From Setoptus koraiensis (taxonomy: Eukaryota; Animalia; Arthropoda), in NCBI GenBank assembly GCA_048013815.1, contig CM106585.1:12090001-12154000 (forward strand): DNA of 64,000 nt, read 5' to 3'. Below, in pieces: positions 2,059 through 32,599 of the stretch. The position numbers and the translations under genes are program-made. Below the pieces are notes generated by a model. It was given only the letters and a program-made list of their open reading frames with translations, did no database searches and was not told the origin of the DNA. The first letter of the stretch is position 1. Each line of letters opens with the position of its first letter.

Positions 2059-2580
2059 ATGTTGTGTTGTGTTGTGCCGGCACAACTCTTTCTCCGACCG
2101 TCCGTCTCTCTGTTGTGCAACAAAATCTCCTCGACATGACATAATCTCTCTGTCTCTCTTATATAATCGTCTGCCTGTTCGTCTCACCTGTGTGGCTCGC
2201 CGAAATTGGCCGACATGGTCCAGTTGCATGTGTGTGTGCTGTCGCTGTTACGTATCGGTGTTGCATGCCAGCCAATTATCGGTGTAGCATGGCTGCACCG
2301 CAACTAGGTAGCGCCACTGCGCAAACTATGTTTAGTTTATTGGCGCCTAATAATAATTAATTACAACCAACCAACCGCCCGCTAATTATGCAATCAGCTA
2401 ATCATGACTAGCGAGCGCAATCAATTAACTGCGCTCTCCCGTGTGCCGTTCGACTTGTTCATGTTAATTCTCGTTCTGTCTCCATCAATCTCATAACCTA
2501 ATCTAATAACCGTAATTCTCATAATTCTTATGATTCCCATAATTCCCGTAATTCTTATCTAATTGTCGTCGCCTCATCAG

Positions 2581-2805
2581 TGCTGTAGTGGCGCAAAGTG
2601 TGGGCATGTTCATAGGGTCCACCTTCAAGGATTTGGAGCTGTCCATTACGATAGCCGCGCTATACTCCACTTCCACCATGCTGTTCGGCGGCTTCTACTC
2701 CTCCACAATTCCGCCCTGGCTCAGCTGGCTTCGTTATGGCTCCGTCGTGTATTACGGCTACCTCAACATGCAAATAATAGAGCTGGGATCGTCGCCGCCC
2801 CTCTC
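2581..2805 (+). CDS. ABCG-family half transporter, penultimate coding exon (ABC2 membrane domain); upstream exons not identified in the window
   Basis: Translation AVVAQSVGMFIGSTFKDLELSITIAALYSTSTMLFGGFYSSTIPPWLSWLRYGSVVYYGYLNMQIIELGSSPPL matches the ABCG TM3-TM5 pattern (AQSxGxFxG, LFGG, IPPWLSWLRY). Acceptor CATCAG ends at 2580; donor GTAAGT at 2806. Confidence 0.85.
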
Positions 2806-3003
2806 GTAAGTACCCGCAATCAAGCCGATTGAATTGATTAATTAATTGGCTGATCGTGCTCGAATCGGAGCAGAAATAGCGCCCCCGCCAGAATGACCAA
2901 AGTGACCGAAGTGACCGAAGTGACCAATCCAATCTAACCAACATCTCTGCTAATATCTGAATATTTCACGTGCAATAATCAATTAATCGCTAAACGGAAA
3001 TAG

Positions 3004-3385
3004 GTGCGCGCTGAAAAACTCGAAATACCCCTCGTGCCTGGTGTCGCAGTCGAGCTCGCTGGTGGGCCCCCAAAATGGCCAGCAACAATCGCACATGATT
3101 GGCCACCAGGAGGCCACCATCAACCAAACTGCCATTGTGTACGGCAACTCTGCCGGCCTGACCACATCGTCGCTGGCCGGAAACCAGTTGGCCGCCGGCA
3201 ACCAGCTACAACTGGCCGCGCCACACTACATATCGAGCAGTGACATTTTGGTCGGTCTGGACCCCATGAGTCCCAACGAAATCCCCTATTCCGTGTGGCT
3301 CAACACCCTGTGCCTGATCGCCTTCTTGCTGGCGTTCCGCATTGCTGGCTATCTCATACTAAGGATCTATCACAAACCGAGCTGA
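3004..3385 (+). CDS. ABCG-family half transporter, last coding exon
   Basis: Acceptor TAG at 3001-3003 joins in frame (phase 2) to give S-CALKNSKYPSCL...WLNTLCLIAFLLAFRIAGYLILRIYHKPS*, a typical ABCG C-terminal helix (FRxxGYLxLR). Confidence 0.85.
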
Positions 3386-3502
3386 TTGGAAAGTTCCCAT
3401 TCTGTTCGGAAAATTCCCATCCTGATTGGAAAATTTACATTCTGTTCGGAAAATTCCCATTCTGATTGGAAAATTTACATTCTGTTCGGAAAATTCCCAT
3501 TC
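3383..3502. repeat. 20-bp tandem repeat (two alternating variants, 40-bp higher-order unit) at the start of the ABCG 3' UTR
   Basis: GGAAA core at 3388, 3408, 3428, 3448, 3468 and 3488. Confidence 0.85.
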
Positions 3503-4175
3503 GGGCCCCCTCGGGTGATATGGTGCCCATTTAACATATACACATTTCCATATTATCCCCATATTTTGATATATTATTATCGAAATTTCACATCAGCAAC
3601 AAATTATCGGTTACGAGCACGCCGGTCAAGCGGCTAAAACAACTTAGCCAAAGTTGACCATCAGATGGCACTTGATCGATGGTGCAAAAACGCTAGAAAA
3701 CACTGCCGGAAACACTGCACAGATTTAGTTTTTCCACACTCTGTCTGTAATATTTCTTATTGTAACATATATATTTGTACATTGTCATATTGATGAGCTC
3801 TGACAAGCACTCTCGGCGCACTCATCGGCTCCTAATTATCGGCATCGGCTCGCAATTATCGGCATCGGTGTGCGTGTGTGTGTGTGTGTGTCTGCAAAGC
3901 CATTAAGAAAAATCAACCGAACCACCTAACTAAGCTAATCAATTGGAGCGCAAATTATATTATTTACGAATCATCATGTCAACATGGTCATGTCATATCA
4001 TTGCATTTTATACATATTTATAGATTGTAATTTACACGCAAAGATAATGTATCGCTCGCTCGCGCAAACAAACAAATCTCTTGCTATAAATCAATATTGT
4101 CTTCTCTCATCATCACCTCTATTTGGCGCTGGCAGCCAGCTATAGACGCCAATAAGTGTTGAGCTGTGTCAAGTT

Positions 4176-4202
4176 GTGACGTAACTGGGCCAGTTACGTC
4201 AC
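4176..4202. promoter_or_regulatory. Perfect 27-bp palindrome carrying two inverted TGACGTAA (CRE/PAR-type bZIP) sites
   Basis: GTGACGTAACTGG-G-CCAGTTACGTCAC: 13-bp arms with a 1-nt spacer. A regulatory function is inferred. Confidence 0.5.
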
Positions 4203-4367
4203 TCGGGACCCATTCGAATTTCGACACAAATCACATTCCAATGTCAGTCAGGTCACGATACGAATCGTGTTGTTGTCCGCCGCGAGGTCGCGCCCTCGAA
4301 ACTCGCAACACTCTCTTCCTTTGTGGGTCCTGTCCAGTTTTGTGGCTCTCGCCGGCACTTTTAAGCA

Positions 4368-4432
4368 GTTTTCGGCAATTTTCGGACGTTTTCGGACGTT
4401 TTCGGACGTTTTCGGACGTTTTCGGACGTTTT
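4368..4432. repeat. 10-bp tandem repeat TTTTCGGACG
   Basis: Five near-perfect copies plus degenerate flanks. Confidence 0.9.
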
Positions 4433-6047
4433 CGCCCGATGGTGTCGGCGCTCTCGGCCATGTTCGGCCTCATTTGCATGCGTTTTGATTTGATTTTCGG
4501 CCGGGGCCCCAGTCTCGGCGCCACTGGTCGGCGCTGATTTAATTTCAGTTAATTTATATTCACAGTGTGAACATAACATTGCAGGCGCTGGCTGTTCCGG
4601 CCGCGACCCACAAGCCGTCGGGCTCGCCGTTGATCAGAACAGAGGCTCGCAATATTTCTAGAATTCGTGAATATTTTCTCACATTCTAATTCTCCATTTT
4701 CTGGTACCAGCTAGCGGTTCTTTCGAAGCAGCCAGCGGCAGCGCTATCGTGAGCTGGCCAACTGTTCGAGATGAATCGGCCCATTAATTGCCCGGTATGG
4801 GTACACAGCGTGGGCGCGCCACAAGAGGCCCCTGTCGCACTTGGGGTGTTTTCGTGCGAATCGCTGCGTTTTTTACCCCAGATGATTTATTTAATGCTCG
4901 TGCGAACGAACGGATCGAACGGAGAATGGGCGCCGTTTCGACGTATCGCATCGCTGCGCTTTTTGCCCACTATTTATTATTTGCCATCATGATGATGATG
5001 GCGGCACAGTGTATAATCGAGTTGCACAATGTAGTTGTCTGAGTCGGCTCACGGAGGGCGCTAACAACTTGGACAAAATCAGTGAGGCGCAAAATCACCG
5101 CCAGCTCGTGCGGCCACGTGTATCACGGGGAGTTTATATCGGCTGTTGGCCGTATGACTATATCTAATGGTAAATATCAAATGAGAACTATATCCAAAAC
5201 AAGTGGCAACGGCGCTAATATCGCCGCCAGTGTTAACCAAATGGCAGCCATCAATTTGTTATCGCATGCAAATATAAAATATGTGAGCACAGTGTTACGC
5301 AACAATCAGACAACACCAAAGAGTGACTCGAGTCGGCAGTGTTGCATTACATTATTGCCTGGCTGTTGGCTGGCAAATGCAAATTAACGCCAGAGGGCCC
5401 CTCGTCGCCGACACGATGGTATCTGTGTAATGCGTGTACGGGCGATTATCCGATTGCAGCAGACAACAGCGACATTAGAAGCGTGAAGATGACTCATTGC
5501 GTCATAAATGAGGTGCACAGGTCTACACAGTGTGTAAAGAAATCATATCTCCATTTCTGCGAATGCGCTCGCCTGAGCAGTGATCCAGAGCAGAGTGCGG
5601 GCCTCACACTGTGAGGTTAAACGGGCCCCAGTTGGCCCAACGAATCGGGAGTGACCGCGTGCACCGTCGCTAGGTGTCGCGCGCGCGCTCCCAACGATCA
5701 CGATAATCGGGACGGATCCGCGCCTCGTTCCGCCTCCGTCGGACGCCCGCAAACAGGGCCGCGTCCTAACTGTGAGTGTCGGGCCGCCAAATGAGGGTGT
5801 ACAGGTGCCCGGTCAACCCCGGTCGCCACCGTCAACTGTCGGCCCGCTGACGGTGGCGACATTTCTACTAGAAATGGTGATCGGGCCAAGAAATTTTCTA
5901 GGCCCGATCGCTAGTGCCCATAGTGGTAATTGGTTCGTTGCAATTACGCAGAGTATCGCGGGAAGGCGAAAAATGCCCCAAAGTTTCGAGCGAACGTCTC
6001 GAGCCCCGATCGCCTCTGGCCGATACCCGCGGCGAGAGCCGCCTGGC

Positions 6048-6128
6048 GGCCATTTTTCGGCTCGACGGCGGGCCATTTTTCGGCTCGACGGCGGGCCATT
6101 TTTCGGCTCGACGGCGGGCCATTTTTCG
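6048..6128. repeat. 23-bp tandem repeat GGCCATTTTTCGGCTCGACGGCG x3.5
   Basis: Units start at 6048, 6071, 6094 and 6117. Confidence 0.9.
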
Positions 6129-8563
6129 GGGTCGAGAGCTGCATCGGCACGAAAATGCTCGAAAACTCTCGAAATTTCCCCGAAATTCCAGGCAACTTTG
6201 TGGGCCGTCGGAGCTCCGTTGCGTCGGGGTTCCGTTGCGTCGTCGCGCGTGCAGGTGGTTACAAGTGACAGTGGTGAGTCACGATGGGCCGCCCGCGCCA
6301 GCTGACACAGGCAGCTCCGGCGTGGGCGCTATGCGCCGCATATATATTGTGTCATATATATATTGTGTCGTATATATATATTGTTGCGTTCGAAGGAGCG
6401 GCCCCCAATAATCGTCAGTGTGGGGCGAAATTTTTTGAAACACTTGAGACGATGACTCACATCGTTGGGCAGCTCGTGGCAGCCAAGTGGCCAAGTGCGC
6501 GTGCCGAGTCGTTATCAGATGGCTCTGGCGCTGCTACCGCTGCTGCAGTAATCAGTATATCAGCTGTGGGGCCCCCGTTTGACAGTGCGAGATTAGTATT
6601 AGGTAAGTTATTAGTGTCGCCGCTGAACGCGCATAACAATTGTCAATTGACGCATGCAACTACTTCCGATTCAGGGCACAGTGCCCGGCAGCGGTATTGC
6701 GTAACGCGACGGCGGCGGTTGTGCCGTTGTTGCCGCTGTTGTTGCTGTTGCCGTTGTTGCCGCTGTTGTTGCTGTTGCCGTTGTTGCCGTTGTTGTTGGT
6801 GCCGTTGGTGCTGCTGTTGTGAGCGCACCAACAACGACAACAACAACCAATGACATTGCTTGATGGCGCTAAATGTAGGCCATTATGTAGGCCGCCTAGT
6901 TATATATCTGTTTATATGAGTTGCTTGCGTTGCGTCATGCAGCACAACGCATCGGGGCCCCGCCAGCGACAATCGGCCCAGATGAGTCAGTCTTCTGTTT
7001 GATCTCTTTGGCTTTCTTCTTGCGCCCCCCCCCCCCATCACCCCGTATTATCTGGCCCCGCCATATACTCGCCATATATCTATAATAGTATCGCACGGGC
7101 CAAAGGAAGTGGATGCAATTCATTCAGCTTTGGCGCCCCCCCCCCCCGGATAACGGTTGTTTGCTTGCGTAATGACGCGCTCACGTACGCGTACCATTGC
7201 AAAGTGCAAAATGGGCCCGCTGAGGGCGCGCGCGGGGTGTTGCGCAACATCAGCGGCCGACTCACGAGCGGGCAAAGGGGCCCCGTGATACGAGGCCCGA
7301 CGAATCGGAATGAAACGAAATGAGATGAATCGAGTCGAGCCGAATCGCATTGACTGGATGGCTTTGGGAGGCGGCCGAAGGGGGCGAATTGCGCCAGATA
7401 AACGGCCCGCCCGCTCTTGACCACCGCGCCGTTGGTCGGTCCAGTGGCTTATTGGCCAACAAGCCAATGCGGACCGACCAATGCGGCTGCGGCGGAGGCG
7501 CCGGGCCGCATCTGGCTTTTGGCCCGCACACTGGCCCGGCGTAGCCCGAAAGACAGATGCGTAGGAGTGATAATGTATTAAATATAACGCGCGCACAATG
7601 ACACTAATGCTTCCGCCGACGATAGTTGCCCAGATACACACTTGGGCGCACCGGGCCAACATGTCGGCCGATGAGTCATCGTGCAGATAATCCATGGCGC
7701 ACGCGGGCTGGCCGACGCGCACACTGCGCCATTGGGGCCCCGTGCACGTACTGGCTCCAGCGGCACCTCAGAGACAATTCGAAGAGAGCAGCGTCGAAGC
7801 CTCGAACCGGCAACTTGCGAGCTCCTTCGAACCAGCGCCGAGTCGCAACCGGGCCCCAATCGATGTTTGGATGTTTGTTTGGCGGGGGGGGGGGGCGACT
7901 GTGCCCGTGCCAGCTGAGCCGTGCCACTGTGCGGCCGGTGCTGGCCGGAATCGTGAATGGCGCCGCTGACGGGACCCAATGAATGCGGCCACTTGTTCGA
8001 ATCGTCTCTGGGCGCCGTTTCCGCTCGCGCGGCCACACAAACGCGCCCTGTCCGTTGGGCCCAATTGTCGCCGGCACATCATTTGATGGGCGTGCCGGCC
8101 GGCCAGTTGTGCCTCAAACTTGTGGCTTTCGGCCCCCGACACACAGTCGACCGATCGCGATTGATGTCACGCGATATGACGAGGCCCGGCGAACTGGCGC
8201 GGACGGCCCGAGGCGGACTACGGCCGCTCGGACAAGAGCCGCCGAGATTGGCGCCGAGTGTTGTGCTCGCCGGGCGCCGATTGTTGTGCTCGCCAGGCGC
8301 AAAGTTTCACGCACAGCCAGCATAACAATCGGGTTTTGAGTTGCAATTTGCGCATTTTGCTCGCCGCACTATTTTTGTGCATGCCGGCCCGCTCGATATG
8401 TCGGCGCTGACGCTTTTTGTGAGCCCTTTGTGTGGGGCCCCTCGGCTCGAGAGTCTCGAGGCTTTTGTGTCGAGAGGCTGCGAAAATGTGCGCGCACACA
8501 AACTGCCTATGGCACGCCAGAGAGTCATACAGCACGACAATGCCGATTGACAATGGCTACAAC

Positions 8564-8637
8564 AAGTGCGGGCCCCCAACAGCAAGCCGAGCAAGTGAGG
8601 CCCCCAACAGCAAGCCGAGCAAGTGGGGCCCCCGAAC
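8564..8637. repeat. About 28-bp tandem repeat containing GGCCCCCAACAGCAAGCCGAGCAAGTG
   Basis: AAGTG starts at 8564, 8593 and 8621. Confidence 0.8.
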
Positions 8638-9597
8638 AAGCAGCTAAACAAGTGTCGGCGGGCTGACACTGTGAGTGCGCCAACGATTGTTGTTGTTGTT
8701 GCTGCTATTCAAATGACAGCTCACTGACAGCTGACGACGCTCAGCTGACGGTGAGTGGCCGGCGTAGAGACGGACAATGTCATGATTGTGCCATTGTTGC
8801 ACGCACAATGGTCGCAATGCTGGCGAATTTGAATTTATCGCCAGCAATTCATTAGTGTGTGCGTGTGTGCGTGTGTGTGTTGGCACTTGTATCCGATGAC
8901 GTTCATTGGCTTCACGGGCCCCCGCCCCCGCGCGCTCTAAATGCGACAATATCCATTCTGTTGCGTGTTCCAGATACAGCCAATGAGCAGATTGGCGCCC
9001 AGATACAAGCAATGCGCAGATTGGCGCCCAGATAGAGGCCAATCGGCCTGTGAATTATGCGCTCGTTTGAATGTCACTTTGCGCAGCGCCATTCAATATC
9101 AGCGATCATTATCACTGGCCACAATCACTGGTGGAGCCCCACTGTGGTCATCTCGATAATAAACTTGTTAAGTCGGCATCGGCGTGATTGGGGGGGGGGG
9201 CCAATTCCGGCGCGCCCATTCACATTCAAATCGAGCACGACAAGCCAATTGCTCGTGGAGGCCCGGCGATCAATTAATGTGAACGCTACTAATTGCTACT
9301 GATTGCCGTGATTCGGGCCGCTTCTGCTGGCGCTGGCCAGCGCATTTCGCGGATCGAAAAAGAAAAAAATGCAAAACGCCAATGGATGCGCGAAATGTCG
9401 ACCGCTTCGAACGAGGCCAAGTCGAAATTGCACCAACAATAACAGTGATTGCGCCGCACGAATGGAAAAATTGCCCTGCTCAGTGGGCGCCCAGCAGACA
9501 CGCCACTTACCAACACTCAATGCGCGCTCGCGCGCCGCGGCCCGCGGATCCGCGCGGCTCAATTAGCCAGCCGGGGGCCCCGACGCGCAACGCTGCG

Positions 9598-9720
9598 CAG
9601 CTTGCCAGCAACATCCCAGCAGCTTGCCAGCAACTTGCCAGCAACTTGCCAGCAACACGGCACAGTAACATGGCACGGTAACATGGCACGGTAACATGGC
9701 ACGGTAACATGGCACAGTAA
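9598..9720. repeat. Two adjacent arrays: 11-bp GCAACTTGCCA and 13-bp GTAACATGGCACG
   Basis: Directly visible; GTAACA at 9665, 9678, 9691 and 9704. Confidence 0.85.
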
Positions 9721-10130
9721 TCTCCTATAATAAGCTGACCAATGGCTGCCTGGCAAGACAGCAGCGTGCTTGCCAGTCTCATTATCAGGCACGCCAATCA
9801 ATGCTTGCGGTGTGTACACTGTTCGGGGGCCCCCGCGAACGGTTGAGTGAAATCAATGGGCCCCAATTGCACAGTTTGAGGCGAGCGAGATTAGATGAAT
9901 TTTCAGAGCGCGCCAACACACACCAGCGCGCAGCCGGAGCCTCATTTGTTACATCATCATCATCATGACATTGGATAGAGATAAAACTGACTGGCAAGAT
10001 TGCCACTCGTGCTCGGGCCCCGATAACGCAACGCCGGGCCGCGCATTGGCGGTGGCATCATCAATTTGGCTAGACAGCCATTTGCCGACTGCCACTCAGC
10101 GTGCCCAGGCAGCCAGTTACAGGCTCGTTT

Positions 10131-10165
<35 letters not shown>

Positions 10166-12140: not shown

Positions 12141-12340
12141 ACACGAAAATACACGCGCAACACACGAAAATACACACGAAAATACACACGAAAATACACA
12201 CGAAAATAAACACGAAAATACACACGAAAATACACACGAAAATACACGAAAATATACGCGAAACACACGAAAACATACGCGAAATTCGCGAAGAGAGATA
12301 CACGAAGATATACGAAATACACGAGAAATACACGAAAAAT
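12141..12340. repeat. About 12-bp ACACACGAAAAT array just upstream of the Ror start codon
   Basis: Directly visible and degenerating 3'-ward; source of the RKYT/TKIH spurious ORFs. Confidence 0.85.
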
Positions 12341-15500: not shown

Positions 15501-17755
15501 GCCCGGCTAACCGTTACATAATCGGCCGTTGCACGACAATATATAATTGATATCGCGCGGCACGCTGAGCTGCAAACAGCTCCAAATCGCAGTTCAGTGC
15601 AGGTCGGCTTGTCGGGCCTCAGTTGCGCCAATTGCGGCAATTGCGCGAATTAGACCGAATTGATAGACCAATTGATGGACTGTAAATAAACAACCGGCCA
15701 GCAGTGCGCCGGCATTTCAGTGCGTCAGTGAGGCCAGATCTTTGCTCGATGATTGATAGTTTCATTTGGCTCGATCGGTCGTTTTATCCGGCTTGATTGG
15801 CCGTTTTATCCGGCTTGATTGGTGGCCGCTCAAACGTGGGCCCGCAGCGCGCATAATCCCGAGCTGGGCTCACTCGCGCGACCCGCACCGTGCTCAGGTG
15901 TGAACCGGGGCCCGCTCGTGCCGCTGCGTCGCGGCCCGACAGGTGCTGACATATGTGGGCCGGGCGGGCCGGCAATATGATGTAATCTCCCGTATCATGC
16001 TGGCAGTATGTACGAACGCGGCCGTGCACACAACAAACGTATATACAAATGTACAACTGTAATACCCGACAGCCGCTGCTAATATAGCGGTGCCAACATG
16101 GTGAATGTTGAACATGGCCGATATTATATCGGCTGGGGCCCGCCGCGGACGAGCCGCAATATTGAGCCGAGGTATAAATTGCGCGCGTTGAGTCAATAAT
16201 ACCCGCGCCGCACAGCCAGCTATGTACTGCGGGCTATGTAGGCCAGCGCAAACAAATGGGGCCCGCACACTGCCCTTGACGACACTGGCTGGCGGCGCAC
16301 GTCGGCAGGGGCCCCATCGGATCGAGAGATCTGACGATGGAACGCAGTCACTCGATGGTTAGATCTCTATCGTGGCCGCCCGAAACCGACACCGAGAACA
16401 AAGTCGAAACAAAAAGCAGCGCCCGCAGTTCGCCGGGCCCCACTTGTGAGTTGCCAGCGAGGGGCCCCACACTGAATCAGTGTGTTTGCACTGATTTGTT
16501 AAGCGCCCGGCACACGCACACACACACACACACCAACACACCAACGCACACGTAAAATTGCTCCGTCGGCCGACCGGCCGAGATTAACTCTTTTTGTTGT
16601 AGTTGTTTGTGGTGCGTGCTCTGCTGGGGCCGGCCACCGTGGGCCCCGGCAGCCGCATCTGGGCTGGGGCCCAGCGCGCGCCTGCATGCTCGTGGCTGGG
16701 CCGGGCCTCGTTCTTCGGGGCTCGCTCGTTGCAAACGAGGCTTCAAAGAACGAGCCCCAAAGAACGAGCCCCAAAGAACGAGCCCCAGAGAAAGAGTCGG
16801 CGAGGGCGCGGAATTCGCGCTAGATTAGACTAGATTGGCGGCGCTGGCTCGCCAGCCAATATTGGCCACATCCATACAACTGTTGTATTACAACACTATC
16901 TGGCGGTGGTATATTGGCGCTGTTCGGCTATACACCAGTTGTATTGTAGATATACGTGTGCATATATATATATATACATGAGCGCGGATATTTGTCCTTG
17001 GGCCCCAAGTCGCGAACGCGCGCCAAGGGCGCAATGTAATTGCCAATCCAAAATAAACATTTTTATCGCCGGGCCCGTCTGGGCCTGGCACACAATTACC
17101 CCAATCGGGTGGCGCAAAGCGGCGAGGTGTGCGGTGCGGATATATTGGTTTCGCAAGCATCCAATATAACTAATATCACCAATTACAGGGTACGGTGACG
17201 CGCATAGCGAGGTATATATGTCCGACTTGATATACTTGGCCAGTGGCCAAGTTGCCCGGCTTGGCATAAACAACAAGCCAACGCCGGCAAGACTAATCGG
17301 CCCTAATGTCCCTCTATTATCCCCTAATCTGGCCACTGTTGGGCCCCACTCGGGCCAGTGGCCCGATTTACCAATTTGCACAACCGGCAGCCAGTAAATA
17401 TACTCCGGCTATCGTGCAAAGGGCCCCCAATATAACATAATACTATATATACATATATATTCCTCGACTCTATCGATACAAAATCTTCGTCATGCAATGA
17501 AGTGTTTTTTATTACTCTGCAACGTAGCGCAGTTTTATTGGGTCAGACACGTGCAATTTAACGTGTCGGGTCGTATCTGTATGCACAGCCTATTAAATAA
17601 TTTTCCCCGTCTCCCTCTCTCTCTCTCTCTCTCCCATTTTCTCCCTGTTTGCCGATCAATCTTTGCGCGGCGCTGCCTACCTAATTACACCGGTGCCTCT
17701 CAACCGGTACCTACCTAAATCACACGCCGGCCCGACGCTGATTACGCGCAACTAG

Positions 17756-19015
17756 ACGCCACTATCGCTGCCAGTACGAGCCCGACGGGCGCCGCAAACC
17801 GGGCACAGAGCGGCTCCGACAGAGCGAGGCCAGTCAGGGACACTGCCAGCGCCGTCCCGCAGGCAGACTGGTGGCGCCCGCCGGCGCCCGCGCTCCAATG
17901 GGGCCCTGCTCGTGGGCCGGATTTCGGCGGCGGCACGCAAGCGGATAAGAATGAGAAAATTGCCGACAGTGAGCCAAATGGTTTAATTAAGTTTGCCCTT
18001 CCCCTGCCACAAACAACCCAATACAAATTTGCCGGCCAGCGGCACCTGTTCCGGTGCCAGGTAGTGTGGTCAGCTGGCGCGGTCGCACAGCCCTGGCCGG
18101 CGCTGCAAATCGAGTGGCTCAAGGATGGGGCCCCTCTGGACAGCGTCTACAAGAACGTGCGCCGGATTAACGTGGAACAGCAGCAGCAGCGAGGCGCTAG
18201 CGTCAACGCCAGCCATAATAATAATGATAATAATAACGGCAACAACAACACCAACGACAACAACGCCAACATCGGTCATCGCAATAGACGTCACAACAGC
18301 GCAATATCCACTGGTCATTGGGGCCCCGAACGAGCCAGCTTCGGCGGGCATCATTATCGTGGCCAGCACAAGCACACTCAATATGCTAATGAGCGGCCAT
18401 CCGATGACGCGACAAATAACAACTACCATAAATCGCCCTTGTTGCCAATTAATGGGCCCCAGCCGCACGGCGCCAGCACGCTCGTAACAAGTGGCGACAG
18501 CTTGACCGGGCCCCGGCATTCGGGCGACGCTTGGCAGGGGGCCGCACACGAGCGACACGCACGCAATGAGCGCGACAATGAGGTCGCGAAAGTCGCTAGG
18601 TGCCGGCGCCATCAATACGCCGCATACGATACGGGCGCAACAACCAACGATGGCGGCGCCACCGCAGCGCCCGCCACCGAGGACAGGGGGCGCAGCAACA
18701 AGCGACACGCTCACAATAGCGGCGCCCACAATAGCGGCGCCCACAATAACGGGCGCCAGATAATGAAGCAGCGCGCCAGCGGCGGCCAAACCAACAACCA
18801 CAGATTAGTGGAAATCAAGAATATACTGGACAGGGCCAAAGGCAAACTGACCTCTAGGCTGCGCATTCAAGAGCTGCAAGTGGCCGACTCGGGCCACTAC
18901 GAGTGCCTGGCGCGCCTACAAGTTGCGCCCCAAAGCGCTGACGCAATTAATGCGCCTAACGAGCCGCAGTATGGCGCCAGCATACAGTCGACGGGCGCCC
19001 TGGTGGTGAGGCCAA
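17756..19015 (+). CDS. Ror: Ror coding exon 2 (Ig-like domain with a large insertion)
   Basis: Open frame from acceptor TAG (17753-55, phase 1). Ig motifs FRCQV, IEWLKDG and SRLRIQELQVADSGHYECLA...STGALVVRP match the ROR Ig domain. Donor GTAAGT at 19016. Confidence 0.85.
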
Positions 19016-19304
19016 GTAAGTACATACTAATCATTTCGTGATTGCCCGCACAAGCCCGACATGTCGCAATATATCGTCGGGCATGTGCGCGGAATAGGTC
19101 GGGACATGTCGGGACGTGTCGGCGGGGCCCCAGCGGGCCGGCAACACATAATGCTGCGACAAATGGCCGGCCCGGTCGCATGCAGCGCCCGGTTGCACGC
19201 TGTGACTCACAGCCTGGCGCCCATTATATGTGTTGCCATAATAATATTTAGTGGCCGGCATAATCAATTTGGGGCCCGCAGCGAGCTACGGGGGCCCGCC
19301 GGTA

Positions 19305-19416: not shown

Positions 19417-19816
19417 TATCCCGGCGCGCATATCCCGGCGCGCTTTTGCCGGCGCACAGCTGAGGGGGCGAAACTGGTGCCAGATTGATTGCTTTCGACT
19501 CGTACTAACTATCATTCACTTGCTCTTGTAACCCTTGCTCTTTCGCTGTGTCTCTTCCACTGGGCGCATTGTCGCTTTGTCGCACCCCCGGCGCTGGTGG
19601 GCACTTTTGGCGCTGCGCCATTGGGGACCCAAACGCACGCATTGCCGCAATTGGCGAATATACTCAACAAATAAATTATCCATTCTCTCAATGGCCAACA
19701 ACAACGACACCAACAACGACAACAACGACGCCAACAACGACAAAAACGACACCAACGACAACAACGGCAACAACGACAACAACAATAATAATAACCATCA
19801 CAATGACGTCATGCAG

Positions 19817-19889
19817 AGCGGCCCATTGTCAGTGGGCAGCCGGACAACAGCAACAGCGCCAGAGAGGAGCAGCGCGGATCTGAAGTCAA
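19817..19889 (+). CDS. Ror: Ror coding exon 3 (73-nt linker exon)
   Basis: First AG after TACTAAC (19503-09); donor GTGAGT at 19890. Phase 1 in and phase 2 out reconciles exon 2 with the 30633 acceptor (KRPIVSGQPDNSNSAREEQRGSEV-N). No homology support. Confidence 0.55.
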
Positions 19890-22483: not shown

Positions 22484-22571
22484 TTTGGGTCTGTTTGGGT
22501 CTTTTTGGGTCTTTTTTGGTCTGTTTGGGCCCGTTTGGGTCCGTTTGGGTCCGTTTGGGCCCGTTTGGGTC
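22484..22571. repeat. 10-bp TTTGGGTCCG-type array
   Basis: Directly visible. Confidence 0.8.
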
Positions 22572-22927
22572 CGGCGGTCGGGCTGCGGCGCTAACGCTGC
22601 AACGGTCGAGCGGTCGCCCGCAGCCTGTGAGGCCGGCCTCACAGGCTTGCGGCCCAATCTGGCCCCAATAAAAGTCGCCGGCCCACCGGCGGGCGAGAGG
22701 ATGCGCCCTCCGCGACGCAGGCGCCATCCCGTTTCGGTCTGGCCGCCCGGTTTGTGTGCCATGTATCGTGTCGGGCCGCTTGTTGTGGGGCCGCGTGTGA
22801 GCTCGTGAAAAACACGTTCCAAATACCGAAACGATGCTTGCGAGCACACTGACACAAACAAAGCCCAGCCCAGCAAAGCGATTAAATGCGCCTAGCGAGC
22901 GCTGGCAGCGCTGAAAAGTCGCTCGGC

Positions 22928-23044
22928 TATTTCTAGCTATTTCTGGCCTCTCTTTTTAGCACTTTCTGGCCTCTCTCTTTAGCTCTTTCTGGCCTCTCTT
23001 TTAAGCTCTTTCTGGCCTCTCTTTTTAGATGTTTCTGGCCTTTC
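22928..23044. repeat. About 20-bp TTTCTGGCCTCTCTTTTAGC-type array
   Basis: About five imperfect copies visible. Confidence 0.8.
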
Positions 23045-25403
23045 TTTTCAGCGAAATGGGCTCCCCATTTAAGGCAAACCTCACATCTATCATTATATTA
23101 TTTATGCGGCGTTGCGAGCGGCGTCTGTTGCTGGAGTCAGTCGCCAGAGTGTGTCGCTATAGTTGCTCGCCAAAGTCCGTTACCGCAGTCTGTTACTGGA
23201 GGCTGGCGTCTCGGCGAGGCGATGATTTACATTTATCGTGGCGCCCCTCACAACTTTGTTAGGCGAGCCGGGGCCCCAAGTCAAGGGCGATGTAAAGCCG
23301 AGCTATGTGGCCGTTTACTATTCTATTTACATATCGTCGTCGCGACCATACAAACTGACAATTGTCGAGCGCGACGTCGCCGGCGCAAATCAGCCCAATG
23401 CACGCGCCGAGGTGCGGCCACGGGCCTCTGTCGCGCAATCCTCTGCCGGAAGAGCCCGCTGTGTGTCTGTCTGTCTAGCTGGCTGGCACCGTCGGTGTGG
23501 GGCCCGCGCTCGCCCGCGTCCGGCCCGCACAGGCCGGTTGGGTGGGCCGTGTGGCCGAGCGTTTGATTTGTTTGGCCAATCATTTGCTAGCCGGCTCATT
23601 GCCCCGCCGACATGTGCAGTCGCATGCAGCCTCATGCAGTCGCATGGGGCCCCACAGATACTCAAAGTCCGATTAAACGGCGCTGCAGTTGGCTGTTGGC
23701 CTCGGCGCCGCTTTTGGGGCTCCGTGGCGCACGAGGGCTCAACTGTGGCGATCGGCCGCGGTCGCACAATTACGCAACTCTGGCCCTTGTGTCGATTATG
23801 CTCATTAAGCGGAGTGTTGCAATAAACATGTTTACAGCTCTTACTGTCTACATGGGCATGTATGGGTGCTTGTGGGTGCATGTATGGGTGCTTGTGGGTG
23901 CATGTATGGGTATATTTGGCGAGTATAAGCGAGTATATATGCAAGTGTATAACGAGCGAGTGTATGTACGCGAGACCGGTTATTATGCAATAACACGATA
24001 ACAGTAATAATGGCAATAATAACAGACAATAATATCTGCTAGCAAACATTGTCATATAATCAGTTCAGTTTGCTCATCATTATGCACAACTAGTGTCAGA
24101 CTAGACAACTAAACTCGTGACACGAGTAGTGTGACACTAGGCAACGCGTGTTTTGCCACACCAGCGCGTGCTGACCGCAGCCCGATAAACAAGTGCAAAT
24201 AAACACTCTCGTTTGGGGCCCACATCAGCTGACTGCTCTCGCTAGCTTGTCAATTGGCCAATTGACCGTCAGTTGAGTCAGTAGAGTCAGTTGAGTCAGT
24301 TGAGTCAGTTGGTCAGTTGGTCAGTTGGTCAGCCGGTCAGCGCCACCCTATCGGGCATTTCCAACAAAGCAGCGAGCCGTTCCGCTAACAACTTTGTTTT
24401 TATGCCAAAACAAACAGTCAGTGGAACGGCTCACAATTGAAAAATTGCCTCGTCGTAGCCGAGTTTTTGCAGCCTTCGGAATCCGAAGGGTTCAAATTTA
24501 AACGAGCCACAGTGAAATTGGCGTCCAATTAGCGCTGACTTTACGGCTGGCTTGACAAGCCAATGATAATCGTAATATAACGATCAAGACGAAATAATAA
24601 CAATTTTGCACGCACAAGCGCGTTTGCCCGTCGCCCGTCGCCCGCTGCCCGTGACGTGCGAAAGCCGGAAATGCGCCGACGGGCCCCCGAAATCGAGCCG
24701 AGTCGACAGAAATAGAGCGCCCCGTTTGTGTGTTGCAGCTCGACGGGCCGGTCACATCGTGCGGGGCCAACACTGCGTGCCGCGTGCAATGTAATGAGCT
24801 CGTACCCGTTATTTGGGCCAATTGGGCCATCCGCTAATTACTGCGCTCGAATGGCCAGCTCGTTGCCACTGGTCACACCGGTCGGCCAAAGGTGCGGCGG
24901 CCGTCGGGCGCTCGTCACGAGCCAAGAAACTGGAAACTAGCGTCTGGCATCCAGATGAGAGGCTTTTTGTTTGGCCAGGGGCCCATAATAAGCTATCAAA
25001 TCCGAGAATCGGGCCCAAAATAAACTATCCAATCCGATCTTTGCCGATCCGGCCCGAGCCGGCCCGATCCGATCGGCCCTATAGGGCTAATATGTTAATC
25101 ATGTAAGTGATTATAACTATAATCCACTTTAAGCTGCTTTCGTTGGCTCGCCGGCGCGATTGACATCGAGCGGATCAATTACCGGCCCGATGCTCGGGCT
25201 CGATATCACGCTGGCTGAATGTTGTGATGTCCGTTGGCAAGTTGTGAATGAATCACAAGTCGCCCCGGACAGTCTCGGCGCGTCTTACGCAGACTGTATA
25301 ATACGCAGACTGTTAAAGAGACTGTTTGCAGACAAACAAAAAGATTGATTGCGAGATAATGAAACCGCGCTGCCAAGCTGCAGAGAACTCGGCCAGCCGC
25401 TGG

Positions 25404-25563
25404 CGAAGATTCTTCGGCAGCGGCGAAGAATCTTCGCCGCCCAATAGGCTGAATGATTAATTAATTAAGCTGCCAGTCACACGGCGCCAACTTCAACTTG
25501 TCACACACGTCGTCTTACGTAAGCGGCCTACGTAAGCGGCAATCAGGCAAATATATATAAATA
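25404..25563 (+). promoter_or_regulatory. Promoter-like motif cluster inside Ror intron 3
   Basis: Palindromes CGAAGA-T-TCTTCG (25404-16) and GCGGCGAAGA-A-TCTTCGCCGC (25420-40), CTTACGTAAG (25514-23) and TATAAATAG (25556-64). Activity is inferred. Confidence 0.35.
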
Positions 25564-28500
25564 GAGGCAACACTTCAGAGCTCGCAACCAGCCTAATACC
25601 ATTAAGTTAATAGGCAGCGCGTGACACGCTGGCCAGTGTCATGCCAGCGACGGCCCCGATGCGATAAGACAAAATAAATAAAAATAAATAAAATAAAGCA
25701 ATATAATATACGCAATATAATGATGCCAACAAGCGGGCGCTGTCGTTGCAGCGAGTCGCCCACGCCGCCTCGGCCTATCGTTGCCGGGCATCGCGACACA
25801 CAAACACGAAGCGAGCAAACTGATAATTGGCGACTCACCTGAGCGACTCGATTTGCTGAGTGCTCGCGTGATTGTGACAGTTGCGATCGTCGATTTTCCT
25901 TTCTTTTCTGGCCGCGTTCGCCCCTCACGACGGCAGAATGGGCAAAACTCAGCAAAACGGGATCGCCTCGCGACGCGAAACGAGATCGCTCCGAGATGCC
26001 CGGCACAATGCCCCGGAAGCCCGACTGGCGGCCAAAGAGCGGCCCGCCGAGGCCGGCCCGATCTTCTTTCGGTCGCCTGGCGCGAGTGAGCGTTGGGGCG
26101 GGATTAGGGCCGAGTCGATTGTGCGGTCGGGCGACTTCCTACGCCAGCGCCCGCTGCGCAACCACGGGAGCGGGCGCGCGGTCGGCGGGGCCCCAGGTTA
26201 TCGCAATACTTATCAATCATGGGCCCCGAAAGAAAAGGGAGAAAGGAGGCGAAGAGAAAAAACTATTAACGGCTGTTTCAGAATGCCATCGCACACAAAC
26301 AGTAAAAGGGGGAATTATTCTATTAAAAGTCACACACACACACACAATAGAGAATGGGAATTCTCGGAATTGACAAATACCGAGCCAGCCGAAATCCAAC
26401 GGTCGCGCGCACACAACCATCATCGTGTGCACTGGCCCCACAATCGCCACGAGCTCGTGGCGAGCTCGTGGCAAGCTCGTGGCAACGCATTGTCGTGTGG
26501 CGTATAGCGGGCGCCGCGTCAGTCGCGGCGTGTTATTGTTGCGCCCCCGTTTAGCCGATGATATTGCTACCTGGGCGAGAGTTGCCCATGAATATATATG
26601 AGTTGGCCGACGAGCCAAGGCAACAACGACACAATCTTATGCATAACATATGATATATCCGTACCACATGCTGCGAAAAATACCCAGATCGCATGCCGCT
26701 GCCAGTGCCGTCGACTATTAACTGGCTCGATGGGCTTCATTGGCGAGCTTGCATCATTTTTCACCATTCGCCATTCGCAGCAGCAGCGGCAGCCAATGGA
26801 CGGGCCCCAGTTGCATATAAAATTAATATTAAAATTGGTGAAATGTCAGGCTGTATCCAGTTGAAAACAAAGCGCACGAAGGTAACGCGGCCCCTGGCGC
26901 CGTATTGCGTTCTTAGCAACGCGACAGGGGCGCCATCGAATGCGCAGTTTCGGCTCACCAGAGGCCGAGCTGCCAGAGATTGCCGGTCCGGCCGACGCTC
27001 ATAATTTTCGCCGCCAGATTGTAATTGATTTCGTTGCCACTGGCACGCGTTGGCGCGTCCGCGGATCGCGTCGCCGGGCACGTGCATACGGCAACACAGC
27101 GGCCAGAGGGGCAATTATGTTATTATGTCGATCAATAGCGCCGCTGCGGGCCGGCGGGCCGGCCGGCCGGTCATCTGTCACTCGACTCGAGTGACTCGAC
27201 GCACCGCCGGCGATGCTCGCCGAGCCAAATATCACTCGAGCTAATGTGTCGCCAGAAATTTGTCGTCGCAAATTGCTACTCGCAATACCGGCGACAGACG
27301 GGCCGCCAGCGATTGGCGAGACACGGGCGAGACATCGGCCAGGCGTTGGCTAGACACGGGCGAGACAAGGCGACATCCGGGCCCCATGAGGGCCAAATGG
27401 GGGCCGAATGGGGGCCGACTGGGGGCCGAGTGTCGGCGAAAATGCGCAATGTGACGCTTATTTATTTGCGCGTTTGCGATGGCCGCGGTGTTTGTTTGTC
27501 GCCGGCCCATCGATTACGATTGCACTTGGGCCTGTCAAACGATCGTCGCCAATCGCCGGGCCGCCAATCAAATCGCGCCCGCCGAGAGCGGCCCGAATGA
27601 AGTGCGCGACGGAGCGGCAATTATCGCGCACATCGGGCGACACCGTGATATATAATGTCGGCCATATTTATGTATCGGCTGTCACTTGTCGGATGACGCA
27701 CGGGCCCAATTAGCCCGGCGCGATGCCGCACCGAGTGCCCGCGCGGCCGATCGACCGATTGACGTTGAGCCCGCCCATACATAATAATATAATATAATTT
27801 GGGCGGCCAATTATCGCACGCGGGCCCCCATTGTTTGGCAGTGCAATTTTTATTTCACCTAGCCACTGGCCACTGGCCAAATAGTCGCCGGCCAGTTAAT
27901 ATTTGCCCGGCCAGCTCGGACAATAATAACAGTAATAACAGTAATGATAATAATAATAATGGGCGGTCAATTGATTGAGCAACGGGCCGGCGCCGGCTGA
28001 CTCACTTGTCGGACGGCGAGCGGTTATTGCGTCATCTGCGGGCCACTTGCCATTAGCGCAATCATTCGGCCCACTATAACTTATACAACTCGGCAACTCG
28101 GCAACTCGCACTAGCCCGAGCCTATTTTGGCGACACGGGCCGGACCGGCTCGCCGAGTGGCCAAAGTGGCCCGACGCAAGTGCGGAAATATTGCCAGACA
28201 AGTGGGCACGGGCATAACGCGCAAACAAGTGGCGCCCACTATTCCGTCGCGCCATAATGTAATTCTAACTGTCTTGGCGCTGCCAGCGGCTGCGTGTGTC
28301 TAGCCGAAATCCATTAGCAATTAAGTGGAGTTTGTATGCCAGTGGCGGATCGGTTGTTGCCGCCGTTGTCGTTGTCGCCGTTGTCGTTGCTGTCGCCGTT
28401 GTCGTTGTTGTTGTTGTTGTTGTTGTTGTTGTCGGCGTTGTGTCACGATGACATAAGCATGAGCGTTTCGCAATTGCCTGCATTGTGACCGTGCGGCGGT

Positions 28501-28756
28501 CGTTAGCGGCCGCCAGTCACTTAGTCGCCACTACCGGTCAACCGAGGCCCAGTTTGTATTGTCGGCGCTACGTGCGCGTTGCGTAATACGCGCTACGTAA
28601 GCAGCGCGCGGCGTGTGGCGACAAAACAGACGGACAGACAGCGGCAATCTGTCATTCAATGTTGTGTTGTGGCGTCTCGATATTGGGCCCGACACTGGGC
28701 GCTCCCAGTCGCTGTTCGGGCCGGCAGTCGAGCGGCTCGGACAGGCCGCACGGGCC

Positions 28757-28963
28757 GCACAACTCGCACAACTCGCACAACTCGCACAACTCGCACAACT
28801 CGCACAACTCGCACAACTCGCACAACTCGCACAACTCGCACAACTCGCACAACTCGCACAACTCGCACAACTCGCACAACTCGCACAACTCGCACAACTC
28901 GCACAACTCGCACAACTCGCACAACTCGCACAACTCGCACAACTCGCACAACTCGCACAACTC
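28757..28963. repeat. Perfect 9-bp tandem array (GCACAACTC)x23
   Basis: 207 nt equals 23 identical units; produces the TTR/QLA/HNS/ELC/VVR spurious ORFs. Confidence 0.95.
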
Positions 28964-30632
28964 CGTCACTCCCTTGCCCCCTCGGTCCGTTGGTCGCCAG
29001 GGTTGGCGTGCGGCCCGCATGGTGCGCGCCCGACCTTGCCCGGCGACTTTCGTCGGCGTGGCCAGTGCGCCGATTTCGTCGCACCGCCTTGTGGCGCAAT
29101 CGGCAAAGTGAGGGCTCGCGGGCGCCCGAGAAGGAGGCCCGAGAAAGACTCGCCGGCGCTCGCACGGCTCGCACGCCTCGCAACAGAACAGACGCCAGAA
29201 CAACAATTCGTCGTCGGATACGTTTGCAGTCGTAATGAAAATTCAGTTGGAAAATTGATAGCCCGACGCGGGCTCGCATGGCCACACGACATGGCTGGCT
29301 GGCCGGCCGGCCGTAATAATGGGCCCGTCGTCGGACAATTGGCGGATTGTGTGGTGCGCAGATTGTGCTATATATAGCCGGCTGTCCGGCGACCGGGCGC
29401 CCTCTGATGCGGCCTGTCTCGCCGGACGCCAGCCCGCGAGCCCGTTTCAAAAAGTAATGGGCCGCTGCAGCTCCACGAGCGCCATAAAATAGCGGCCAAA
29501 ATGGAGCCTCGCTAACGAAGCGGGCGCAGCCAGCCGCCATCTGGCCGGCCAAGTTGCGGGCCGGCCAGATAGCGGCAGGATGTGGCTGGCGAGCTCGCGA
29601 TCCGGACACGATGCGGCGCGAGCGCGCGATCCGGCGACGATGCGGCGCGAGCGCGCGATTGATGGCGCGCCGTCCGGCCGGCCCGACAACAAGACGAACG
29701 AGGCCAGCCGAGATGAAATATCTCAGATAACAGCAACAACAATGGGCCAACCACAAAATTGCTTCTGGGCTGCCGAGGGGGGATGGGGGCGCAACGCGAA
29801 AGCGTGACCAGAGGATAATCGATGGCCCGCTGTTTGGGTGTGCGAGCTGGCGGGTTTGTGCCAGCGCCGGATCATCTCGCCCGTGTGGCCCCATTGTCAT
29901 TGTTGTCGTGACTCGCGACTCGTGACGCTGCCCGCCCTTCGGGCGCCGCTGTCCGTGGAGCGCTGTCCGTGGAGCGCTGCCCGGTGCTTTTGTTGTGCGC
30001 CCGAGACCCGCTGGCCGGATCTCGCGAGTCGCGCCGACGGCACGCACAAGCCGAAAGGAAGTTGGCGACTCACCGGCCGACAATTGGGCCAAAGTAACGG
30101 TTTTGTTGGCGCGACCAGCTCGCCAGATCACGGTAATCTGGCCATATCACGCTCGCAGCGAGCTCGCTGCGGCTGAGCGTCGGCGGGCGGGCGAGCGCGC
30201 CGGCCCGGCTAGGCGGTGCCCGTGGGCCGGCTCTCGTGTTATAGATATTGAGTGCACAAAATATAAGGTGCACCGACTCGGTATTGCCGAGTGCAAGGTG
30301 TACCGAGTGCAAGGTATAATAAAGGCATATAAATAATAAATAAGTAAATAGTGGACGCTCTGGTCATTGTCGCCGAACGAGCGGCTTTGTTGGCCGCTTC
30401 GGGTCTCTTTTTGTCCCAATACCGATCACAATCGTAGTAGCAATTTTATTGGTGCCGTTGCTAGCGTTGCGCTGTCAGGGCGCCGCGAATCACCACGACA
30501 ACGACGTCGGATAATCAACTCTGGCCCCCATCTAACTCTATTACTAACTCATCTGTCTGATTTACTCGCCCCCATTCATCTCCCATCGATGTCTTTGTGC
30601 GCTATCTGTGAAATTGTCGCAACCACTCGCAG

Positions 30633-31374
30633 CCACTCAAGCCGAGCGAGCCAACAGCAGCAACAACAGCAGCAACAACAAGCAACAACGACCACTGCGA
30701 ACGCCGAAGCAGCCACAACAAACGCCGAGGCGGCACCAAGCAGCGGGCCGGAATCCGCGCTGTCCTCGTATGAGCAGCCAACGGTGAACTCTTTTACAAT
30801 TGGCACATTAAATGATGCCAGCGGCCAGCAGCGACGCAATAAACAAGAGCAACAGCAAAACAGCAACAACAGCAGCAACAGCAGCAACAGCGACAACAAC
30901 AACAACGACAACAACGACAACAACAACAGCAGCAACGGCAACGATTCGCATGCGGACTCGCGCAATTGGGGCGACGCCAATCAATCGGTCGCGCTGTCGG
31001 AAGCGCATCTAATGTCGGGCCGGCCCGCCACCGATCTGGCGCAGTGGGCCGACCTGACGGGCGACGCCGACCAACAGGGCGCCAACACGGACGATCTAAT
31101 GGGCGCAGAGGCCAGCATTGAGTTCATTGGCGCAGGCGAGGGCACGTCGGGCTCGCTCGAGCCGACAGACTCGCCGGACTCGATGCACGCGCTAGATTCA
31201 AATGCAAATGAACAACAGCATCATCTATTCATGGACATGGGGGGCCCCAGTCTATCAATAACGGGCTTGCAATATCAGCCCTCGTGTCAAGTGTATGTCG
31301 GTCAGGCGTGTCGCCAGCATCTCGCCAACAAGACCATCTATTCGCCTGACAGTTATTACGTGGCCCAAATGGAG
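30633..31374 (+). CDS. Ror: Ror coding exon 4 (Q/N/T-rich linker plus start of the Frizzled-type CRD)
   Basis: TACTAAC at 30542-48 and first downstream AG at 30631-32. Ends SCQVYVGQACRQHLANKTIYSPDSYYVAQME (cf. ROR CQPYRGIACARFIGNRTVY). Donor GAG|GTAAGT at 31375. An alternative in-frame acceptor exists at 30478. Confidence 0.75.
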
Positions 31375-31734
31375 GTAAGTTGAGCTGCTGCTCGTGCATT
31401 GGTTACGTAATACATACATATGATTATTATTATATTTTGCTAGTGATATCGTGCTCGAGCTAACACTCGTAACATCATACATATATGTATTATGTAACCA
31501 ATTGTCGGCATTGTAGCGCGTCTCTAGATTAGAACCAATGATGCCACGTATTGCGTCCGATGTCTCAACTCTGTTCTCTGTTTGTCGCCCCAATTTGCCC
31601 AACTCTTGCGTCGCCGCGCGCCCTTGCCCGTCACAATGTCACACAATGCGCCGCACACACACACACAATCCGGCCCGTTGGTTGACGCGCGATGGCGCAC
31701 ACCCACGGCCACCGCCACGCCTGGAATCAATCAG

Positions 31735-31875
31735 GAGAAAATGTCACTCATGCTGCAAGCGATCGCCGGCAGCCAACGGATATCGGTTCATTGTCACAAG
31801 TACGCCGTGCCAATGCTCTGCTACAACGTCTTTCAGCCGTGCGATATTAAAAACGGCCAAATAACAAGCCGACAG
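31735..31875 (+). CDS. Ror: Ror coding exon 5 (CRD middle)
   Basis: EKMSLMLQAIAGSQRISVHCHKYAVPMLCYNVFQPCDIKNGQITSRQ fits the CRD C-x8-C-x6-C spacing. CAG acceptor, CAG|GTGAGT donor, phase 0/0. Confidence 0.85.
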
Positions 31876-31938
31876 GTGAGTCGCTAGCGGCACTTGTGTC
31901 TCTGCAAACACTTGCCACTTGGCCCCCGACGCGACCCG

Positions 31939-32050
31939 TTGCGAGGCGACCCATTGCGACGCGATCCATTGCGACGCGATCCATTGCGACGCGATCCATT
32001 GCGACGCGATCCATTGCGACGCGATCCAGCGCGATACGATCCAGCGCGAT
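31939..32050. repeat. 15-bp GCGACGCGATCCATT array
   Basis: About seven copies visible. Confidence 0.85.
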
Positions 32051-32599
32051 ATGATGCAGCGGGCGTCCAGTGAGGCCCCGATATGATCCGGCAAGATCGA
32101 GCCGATCGGCGACAGCCAAGACAGTGCGCGAGCTTGGCCTCGTTGGCCCGACGTTGCGTCATTTCGTTGCAGCGGCAGCGGCAGCAGCAGCAGCAGCATC
32201 ATTTAGAGTGCTGATAGGCAAGTGTCGATAGATTAATATAACTGCCAGCGAGTGTCACTCAAGTGGCCAGTGGCACGTAGCACGCGCCCAGTCGAGCGCC
32301 AGATTATATCAGATCAGATGCGAACTGATCAAATCTAATCTAATCTATCGGGGGGTTCCAAGTCAGCGCGCCAGTGTCGCACCAGTGCGACTTGGCCGAA
32401 CAGGCCAAGTCCGACAGGGGGCCAGCTTACCTGTAATCACAGTGTGTGCGCCACTCAATTACTTTATTATAACTAACTAACGGCCATACTTACCATTGCC
32501 GGCAAGCACACACACACTGACACTCGAAATCACTTATCTTATCCCACTCATTTCAATTCTCGTTGGCCCCCATTCCCGTTCCATTGATATGACCGATAG

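Follow-up and report, generated by a model that had tools for sequence, protein, structure and literature searches.

The question raised by this locus is how far from its 3' splice site an animal intron can routinely keep its branch point. The window analyzed here is a stretch of 64,000 nucleotides (nt) from Setoptus koraiensis (assembly GCA_048013815.1, contig CM106585.1, positions 12,090,001 to 12,154,000 of the forward strand), in which few genes carry introns, among them an ABCG gene and a Ror gene; positions below are those of the window, and features lie on the + strand unless stated otherwise. Animal 3' splice sites are viewed as a compact unit, with the branch point, the pyrimidine tract, and the AG within ~40 nt of one another, and distant branch points are regarded as rare, regulated exceptions. 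The original prediction for this DNA was that every 3' splice site is preceded by a long AG-exclusion zone (an AG-free run that ends at the acceptor) and that distal branch points are the default. We find that introns of at least 360 nt nearly always have such a zone, that the exclusion is specific to AG, that zone length is conserved among relatives, and that a yeast-like branch motif, where present, sits in the zone's 5' part. Short introns are ordinary, and to this extent "every" was too broad. Placement of the branch module far upstream, combined with choice of the first AG downstream, probably explains the longer introns here.

Long AG-free runs are not in themselves unusual in this DNA. 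Across the whole window, the median gap between AGs is 10 nt, yet 31 of 3443 gaps reach at least 100 nt and 18 reach at least 150 nt. Of the latter, 14 fall in the left half, which is rich in GC and repeats; many consist of tandem repeats that do not front any exon, such as 28756 to 28963 and 1914 to 2221 (the second of these had already been pointed out as exon free and is present as described). Because the background holds many such gaps from tandem repeats, a long AG-free run alone is no evidence, and only acceptors placed without regard to AG content count. Exons were searched singly (against Pfam, PDB chains, and relatives). For the acceptors ending at 2580, 3003, 31734, 32599, and 37823, frame and homology fix the position with AG content ignored, and these five have zones of 163, 81, 200, 91, and 74 nt, respectively.

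Two of these acceptors belong to the ABCG gene. The first (zone and acceptor AG, 2416 to 2580) closes the intron before exon A (2581 to 2805; ABC2_membrane, region of transmembrane segment 5 [TM5]; Pfam PF01061, E = 3e-9), which aligns with ABCG1 residues 534 to 596, the homology beginning at exon residue 2. Its 163-nt zone includes a candidate branch site, CAATTAAC, at 2422 to 2429, which would put the branch A at a distance of 152 nt from the AG; a 9-nt repeat also lies in this zone. The second acceptor ends a 198-nt intron (2806 to 3003) whose last part is an 81-nt zone (2921 to 3003 with the acceptor), with ATCTAAC at 2932 to 2938, 66 nt from the AG. Here, placement followed from phase and from relatives: the GTAAGT donor at 2806 leaves phase 2, the frame is open from 2987, and 3003 is the sole in-phase AG between the last in-frame stop and the conserved cysteines. 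The last exon (3004 to 3385; loop cysteines, TM6, and a TGA stop at 3383 to 3385) was anchored via relatives because it has no PDB match, and a relative that lacks this intron supports acceptor 3003 (GPPIT/CAIKNSRFPSC in the relative and PPLS/CALKNSKYPSC in the window, with the slash at the junction).

The Ror gene contributes two further anchored acceptors. A PDB search tiled the human ROR2 CRD over three exons, with positions 6 to 27 at the end of exon 30633 to 31374, positions 45 to 76 in exon 31735 to 31875, and positions 84 to 116 at the start of exon 32600 to 36640, giving a junction at 83/84. The acceptor of the 360-nt intron (31375 to 31734), placed by ROR2 homology, follows a 200-nt zone (31533 to 31734) that has its pyrimidine tract 28 nt in and contains no YTAAC. 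The acceptor of the 724-nt intron (31876 to 32599), placed by frame and homology, follows a 91-nt zone (32507 to 32599) with CACTGAC at 32515 to 32521, 79 nt from the AG; the Fz-domain residues ICRDEC come directly after it. The acceptor AG at 32599 sits within an in-frame TAG, and therefore upstream AGs cannot serve. Just upstream of this zone lies a tandem yeast-like motif, AACTAACTAAC (32471 to 32481), with an AG 26 nt later (32506); if that AG served as the acceptor, the exon would gain 93 nt in frame, closing with TAG, and the site may act as a decoy or as an alternative 3' splice site that is unproductive.

Three more Ror acceptors are candidates whose positions are less closely fixed. 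The acceptor at 17755, before the Ig exon (17756 to 19015), is confined to the interval from 17719 to ~17950; its 165-nt zone (17589 to 17755) lacks YTAAC and has a (CT)n pyrimidine tract that begins 21 nt in. Likewise placed by interval only, the candidate at 30632, before exon 30633 to 31374, follows a 152-nt zone (30479 to 30632) containing ATCTAAC at 30530 and TACTAAC at 30542. The candidate at 19816 is placed by phase logic only, in that GTAAGT at 19016 (phase 1), which is the strongest donor candidate for the Ig exon, and an open 73-nt microexon (19817 to 19889, with a GTGAGT donor) together give exactly the phase required by the frame open at 30634. Its 331-nt zone (19484 to 19816) contains TACTAAC at 19503 to 19509 and is partly a 9/12-nt tandem repeat. 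The Ror Ig domain itself (17956 to 18900) is split within one exon by ~230 low-complexity residues (N, Q, and H rich), and just the two I-set halves are recognizable.

Smaller genes show both layouts. In TXNDC17, the last 74 nt (37748 to 37821) of a 122-nt intron (37702 to 37823) are AG free; the pyrimidine tract lies mid-zone, the final bases are ACACACAG, and frame and homology place the junction at ...VNTKT/NQRLVESECL... No relatives of TXNDC17 were found by a word-based search. The 113-nt TnC intron (49488 to 49600, minus strand) is conventional, with a 38-nt AG-free zone and CTAAC at 49537 to 49533, 46 nt from the AG. A candidate acceptor in the Dh44 5' untranslated region, which is not anchored, follows an 84-nt AG-free zone (59329 to 59414 with the acceptor) with TTTAACTAAC at its 5' edge. 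Roughly 460 nt upstream of it, a 138-nt A/C-rich AG-free zone (58812 to 58950) has AAACTAACTAAC at its start (58844) and an AG at 58950; this zone may end at a further untranslated exon, a candidate with no coding frame downstream.

Measured again in the window, the features on which the original prediction was built proved accurate in nearly every detail. Each of the seven named positions closes with an AG, and the AG-free runs ahead of them measure exactly 163, 81, 165, 331, 152, 200, and 91 nt; the values for TXNDC17 (acceptor G at 37823), Dh44 (G at 59414), and the conventional TnC intron (G at 49488) also agree. The motifs at 19503, 30542, 2932, and 32515 lie where they had been placed, and the two TACTAAC sites are the sole + strand copies in 64 kb. 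The AACTAAC assigned to Dh44 exists as well but starts at 59336 rather than 59337. The bases beside the acceptors are indeed not pyrimidine rich (pyrimidine fraction of 0.40 to 0.70 over -3 to -22), with the best tract near the 5' edge of the zone.

The zones also exceed background AG spacing. Immediately before the zones, within the same introns, AGs occur at a density of 0.03 to 0.13 per nt, from which 6 to 11 AGs would be expected per zone and none is seen; the AG gaps that precede the zones are mostly 0 to 60 nt, so that upstream AG frequency is normal. At each window acceptor, AG has the longest or second-longest exclusion among the 16 dinucleotides. Composition-keeping shuffles, a conservative test, gave P <= 0.007 for the zones before 2580, 31734, 17755, 30632, and 19816, and the zones of 74 to 91 nt were not significant singly. 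Of six anchored window acceptors, four have zones of at least 81 nt and two of at least 163 nt. Such proportions are far outside the human benchmark, in which 3.4% of exons have zones of at least 80 nt, 1.24% of at least 100 nt, and 0.25% of at least 150 nt (PMC1431707).

A further departure from background is conservation among four taxa. The orthologous ABCG exon was located in three further taxa by a full HMMER search with exon A, whose identity is 100% in amino acids and 86% in nucleotides to L006, 77% in amino acids to L007, L009, and L010, and 78% to L011 and L012. At the first ABCG acceptor, the AG-free length is 163 nt in the window, 121 nt in L006, 144 nt in L007, and 159 nt in L011, with shuffle P values of 0.007, 0.02, 0.006, and 0.003, respectively; at the second, it is 81 nt in the window, 84 nt in L006, and 67/71 nt in L007/L010. 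The introns themselves are unalignable (46 to 51% identity over the alignment, versus 78 to 86% for the exon). The second intron has been precisely lost in L011 (1281 to 1285) and L012 (1999 to 2003), where the frame is contiguous, and is kept in the window, L006, and L007. The sole conserved block in the ABCG introns lies at the 5' edge of the zone and is branch-site-like: L007 and L011 have in common an exact 15-mer, ACTTTCTAACTAACC, 115 to 152 nt from the AG, and the window and L006 have in common CAATTAACT, 152 and 94 nt from the AG, an element that in L007 also occurs 36 nt ahead of a conventional acceptor. What this window adds is conservation of the zone at an anchored acceptor in four taxa, together with the dependence of the zone on intron length.

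This dependence is visible in a relative as well. In L011, the exons of two genes, one for GTP cyclohydrolase I and the other DDC-like, were anchored singly on PDB chains. Their short introns (80 to 110 nt) have zones of 25 to 46 nt, mostly with CTAAC or TTAAC 14 to 41 nt from the AG, and introns of 950 and 510 nt have zones of 129 and 128 nt, the latter opening with ATTAACTAACC. The DDC-like gene also includes, between two ~80-nt introns, a 23-nt microexon, CACTGGCAAATCCCGCTCGGCAG (~5060 to 5040 of L011, minus strand), which encodes HWQIPLG of the decarboxylase; a CTAAC lies ~34 nt ahead of its acceptor. For the Ror genes of L001 to L005 (42 to 49% identity, kinase domain), in which no CRD exon was recognizable, candidate zones of 47 to 119 nt were found at acceptors that are not anchorable as orthologous. 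Unlike the window, L001, L003, and L005 have Ig and Kringle-kinase exons with no recognizable Fz/CRD exon between them.

Acceptors from the window and its relatives were pooled, giving 21 in all, of which 16 have zones of at least 66 nt and 5 have shorter ones. YTAAC occurs in 10 of the 16 long zones, versus ~3 expected (P ~7.5e-5), and in all 10 the most distal copy falls in the first 4 to 38% of the zone; in the short zones, YTAAC lies 22 to 46 nt from the AG in 4 of 5. The best pyrimidine tract starts 0 to 81 nt past the zone's 5' edge, whereas pyrimidine content is at background over the 20 nt next to the AG. Zone length follows intron length, with 25 to 84 nt in introns of 80 to 200 nt (25 to 74 nt in those of 80 to 125 nt) and 91 to 331 nt in 11 of 12 introns that are at least 360 nt long or of evidently large size. 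The exception among the large introns is one of ~1 kb (L007, 5749), with a zone of 41 nt. Between branch site and AG, no excess RNA structure was detected in 7 of 8 segments (minimum-free-energy z scores of -0.7 to +1.0 against dinucleotide shuffles); the eighth is the zone before 17755 (z = -3.1).

These features suggest a simple scheme. The introns that remain in this genome have strong GTRAGT donors, which would be combined with a yeast-like YTAAC branch site, often in tandem (CTAACTAAC), followed directly by a pyrimidine tract. This branch module would lie 22 to 46 nt from the 3' splice site in short introns and ~65 to 300 nt upstream in longer ones, and its position far upstream would account both for the long AG-exclusion zones and for the acceptors without an adjacent pyrimidine tract. 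YTAAC and its tract would be recognized on their own, and the first AG downstream would become the 3' splice site, apart from AGs a few bases from the branch site, which would be bypassed; AGs within a few bases of the candidate branch site are skipped in the TnC intron, in L006 intron 2, and at the L011 microexon. We infer that YTAAC serves as the branch point and that the AG is not required for the first splicing step. The missing tract beside the AG is consistent with an AG-independent (U2AF35-independent) first step, although it is not proof of one.

Several findings weigh against this scheme. YTAAC is missing from 6 of the 16 long zones (e.g., those of 17755, 31734, 32599, and L011 6203), three of the seven originally named acceptors are not independently fixed (17755 and 30632 by interval, 19816 by phase only), and the zones are G poor (5 to 21% G). 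In L006, which is AT rich, the exclusion of other dinucleotides with G reaches further than that of AG. Window-wide, CTAAC/CTGAC is not linked to a long downstream AG-free distance (rank 147 of 556 pentamers), and all 7 long + strand cases in that test lie upstream of putative acceptors. A weaker motif, YTRAT, lies 18 to 36 nt from the ABCG AG in all four taxa, where the branch point may thus be proximal, and also at 3003 (-17). Finally, AACTAACTAAC and CTAAC at 31459, both strong motifs, precede AGs (32506 and 31516, respectively) that productive splicing cannot use as acceptors, which means that surroundings outside the pentamer must count as well. The original interpretation is thus supported in part, as regards the AG-specific zones, the conservation of these zones, and the YTAAC and tract at the 5' edge; it does not extend to every site, since short introns and one of ~1 kb have shorter zones.

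A first alternative would keep the branch points proximal, 15 to 45 nt from the AG, with the zones maintained for other reasons: redundant branch points, a wide second-step search, or protein sites in pyrimidine or CA tracts between a regulatory element and the exon. The proximal YTRAT motifs and the long zones without YTAAC fit such an arrangement, as do the CA-rich runs in the zones of 31734, 32599, and 37823. We nevertheless consider it unlikely. It fails to explain why YTAAC marks the edge of the zone in 10 of the 16 long zones, within the first 38% every time, or why the sole conserved block is the CTAACTAAC/CAATTAACT element 94 to 152 nt upstream, and the sequence beside the acceptor is neither conserved nor pyrimidine rich. 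Moreover, because YTRAY is frequent (7.5 per kb), proximal matches are expected by chance in AT-rich sequence.

Alternatively, the zones might mark individual regulated exons, comparable to the rare PTB-controlled distant-branch-point exons of vertebrates, and reflect no property of the lineage. Vertebrate distant branch points do mark alternatively spliced exons (PMC1431707), Ror and ABCG are possibly regulated genes, and the decoy-like motif and AG at 32471 to 32506 could yield an unproductive isoform. However, nearly all of the introns studied that reach 360 nt end in long zones, across several taxa and in genes as unrelated as ABCG, Ror, and the DDC-like gene, and their exons code for pieces that the domains cannot do without (TM5 to TM6, the CRD, and the pyridoxal phosphate fold), which makes this explanation very improbable. 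Least probable of all is an artifact in which acceptors were picked at the ends of chance or tandem-repeat AG-free runs in repeat-rich, G-poor sequence: the 18 window gaps of at least 150 nt, the three loosely placed acceptors, the repeats before 19816 and 2580, and the lack of window-wide CTAAC enrichment speak for it, but it is rejected for the anchored acceptors by placement from frame and homology regardless of AG content, by zone lengths conserved at orthologous sites of unalignable introns in four taxa, by normal AG density just upstream, and, for the long zones, by the shuffles.

How the proposed distant branch module and first-AG choice compare with known systems depends on which feature is considered. 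In humans, a distant branch point is estimated to occur in 1 in 160 to 400 introns (Gooding et al., 2006, PMC1431707), and vertebrate examples include alpha-tropomyosin exon 3, PTB exon 11, and GABBR1 exon 23 (PMC1431707). The mite introns agree with these in all sequence features of the layout, having an extended AG-free zone directly upstream of the exon with normal AG frequency before it, conserving the length of orthologous zones despite unalignable sequence, and using the first downstream AG as the 3' splice site while AGs within ~12 to 15 nt of the branch site are bypassed. They differ in that the vertebrate cases are rare, regulated alternative exons, whereas the mite layout is usual in constitutive introns of at least 360 nt (11 of 12), in unrelated genes and several taxa; unlike the vertebrate examples, moreover, the branch motif in the mite is a strict, yeast-like YTAAC.

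Saccharomyces cerevisiae offers a parallel in several respects, being intron poor, with a strong GTRAGT-like donor, a (T)ACTAAC-like branch site that hardly varies, no requirement for an AG-adjacent pyrimidine tract, first-AG choice, and a variable distance from branch point to AG (PMC2483917). Unlike yeast, the mite is an animal, and its inferred distances (median of ~80 to 90 nt, up to ~300) go beyond the yeast norm. Where branch point and AG lie far apart in yeast, RNA structure usually shortens the distance; the mite segments differ in this respect also, with no excess structure in 7 of 8. More generally, the combination of massive intron loss with a strong branch-site consensus recalls the intron-poor eukaryotes described as having "strong 3' intron structure" (Irimia and Roy, 2008, PMC2483917). 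The long, variable spacing in the mite is unlike the short, fixed 2 to 10 nt of Yarrowia, Trichomonas, Giardia, and several yeasts (PMC2483917).

Whether the layout characterizes a lineage depends in part on where this genome belongs. The full-length Hsp90 open reading frame in the window shares 87% identity with that of the eriophyoid mite Fragariocoptes setiger, compared with 76 to 79% for other arthropods; ~30 environmental sequences also match at 83 to 98% identity. The genome is therefore that of an eriophyoid (gall or rust mite). The S. koraiensis assembly comprises 47 Mb in two chromosomes (PMC11920263), and eriophyoids have undergone massive intron loss (PMC7738191; Floracarus preprint). 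We advance only tentatively the broader proposal that eriophyoids as a lineage have moved the module of branch site and pyrimidine tract away from the AG, by tens to hundreds of bases, and follow a yeast-like first-AG rule without U2AF65-U2AF35 reading of an AG-adjacent tract. If so, they would be the first animal group with distant branch points as the default for longer introns, a change probably coupled to massive intron loss and possibly to altered U2AF1, SF1, or second-step factors; the splicing-factor genes (U2AF1, U2AF2, and SF1) lie outside the 64-kb window. Among the papers searched, none joins eriophyoids or mites with branch points, and the Aculops and Floracarus genome papers are silent on 3' splice sites.

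If the module does lie routinely 65 to 300 nt from the AG, the compact arrangement would not be obligatory in Metazoa. Extreme intron loss would here be tied to yeast-like 3' splice-site choice with long spacing, the opposite of what is seen in other intron-poor eukaryotes. In practical terms, gene finders trained on an AG-adjacent pyrimidine tract would be expected to misplace acceptors in such genomes, and the rule "YTAAC, then first AG" could improve annotation. These introns would also provide a natural system for asking how the second catalytic step locates a distant AG.

The surroundings of the intron-bearing genes change abruptly along the window. At ~34000 to 36000, a shift in composition separates the left part, with a GC content of 51 to 61% and dense tandem repeats (ABCG and Ror introns), from the right part, with a GC content of 38 to 47% and compact intronless genes. 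Genes in the right half are mostly intronless and include Hsp90, ALAS, dUTPase, MPP-alpha, RPB11, and a cyclin. The open reading frames of the window have zero exact matches in the protein collection. A search for sequencing runs found three of DNA and none of RNA; over 29700 to 33700, their contigs were DNA of the same species and showed no joints, and runs X2 and X3 look like a single data set. In the main DNA run, X1, contigs at ~5x depth (genome, ~200x) match 31783 to 31848, in the Ror CRD exon, and 33451 to 33501 at ~85% and then diverge; their source is either another, related organism that was sampled together with the mite or a diverged copy.

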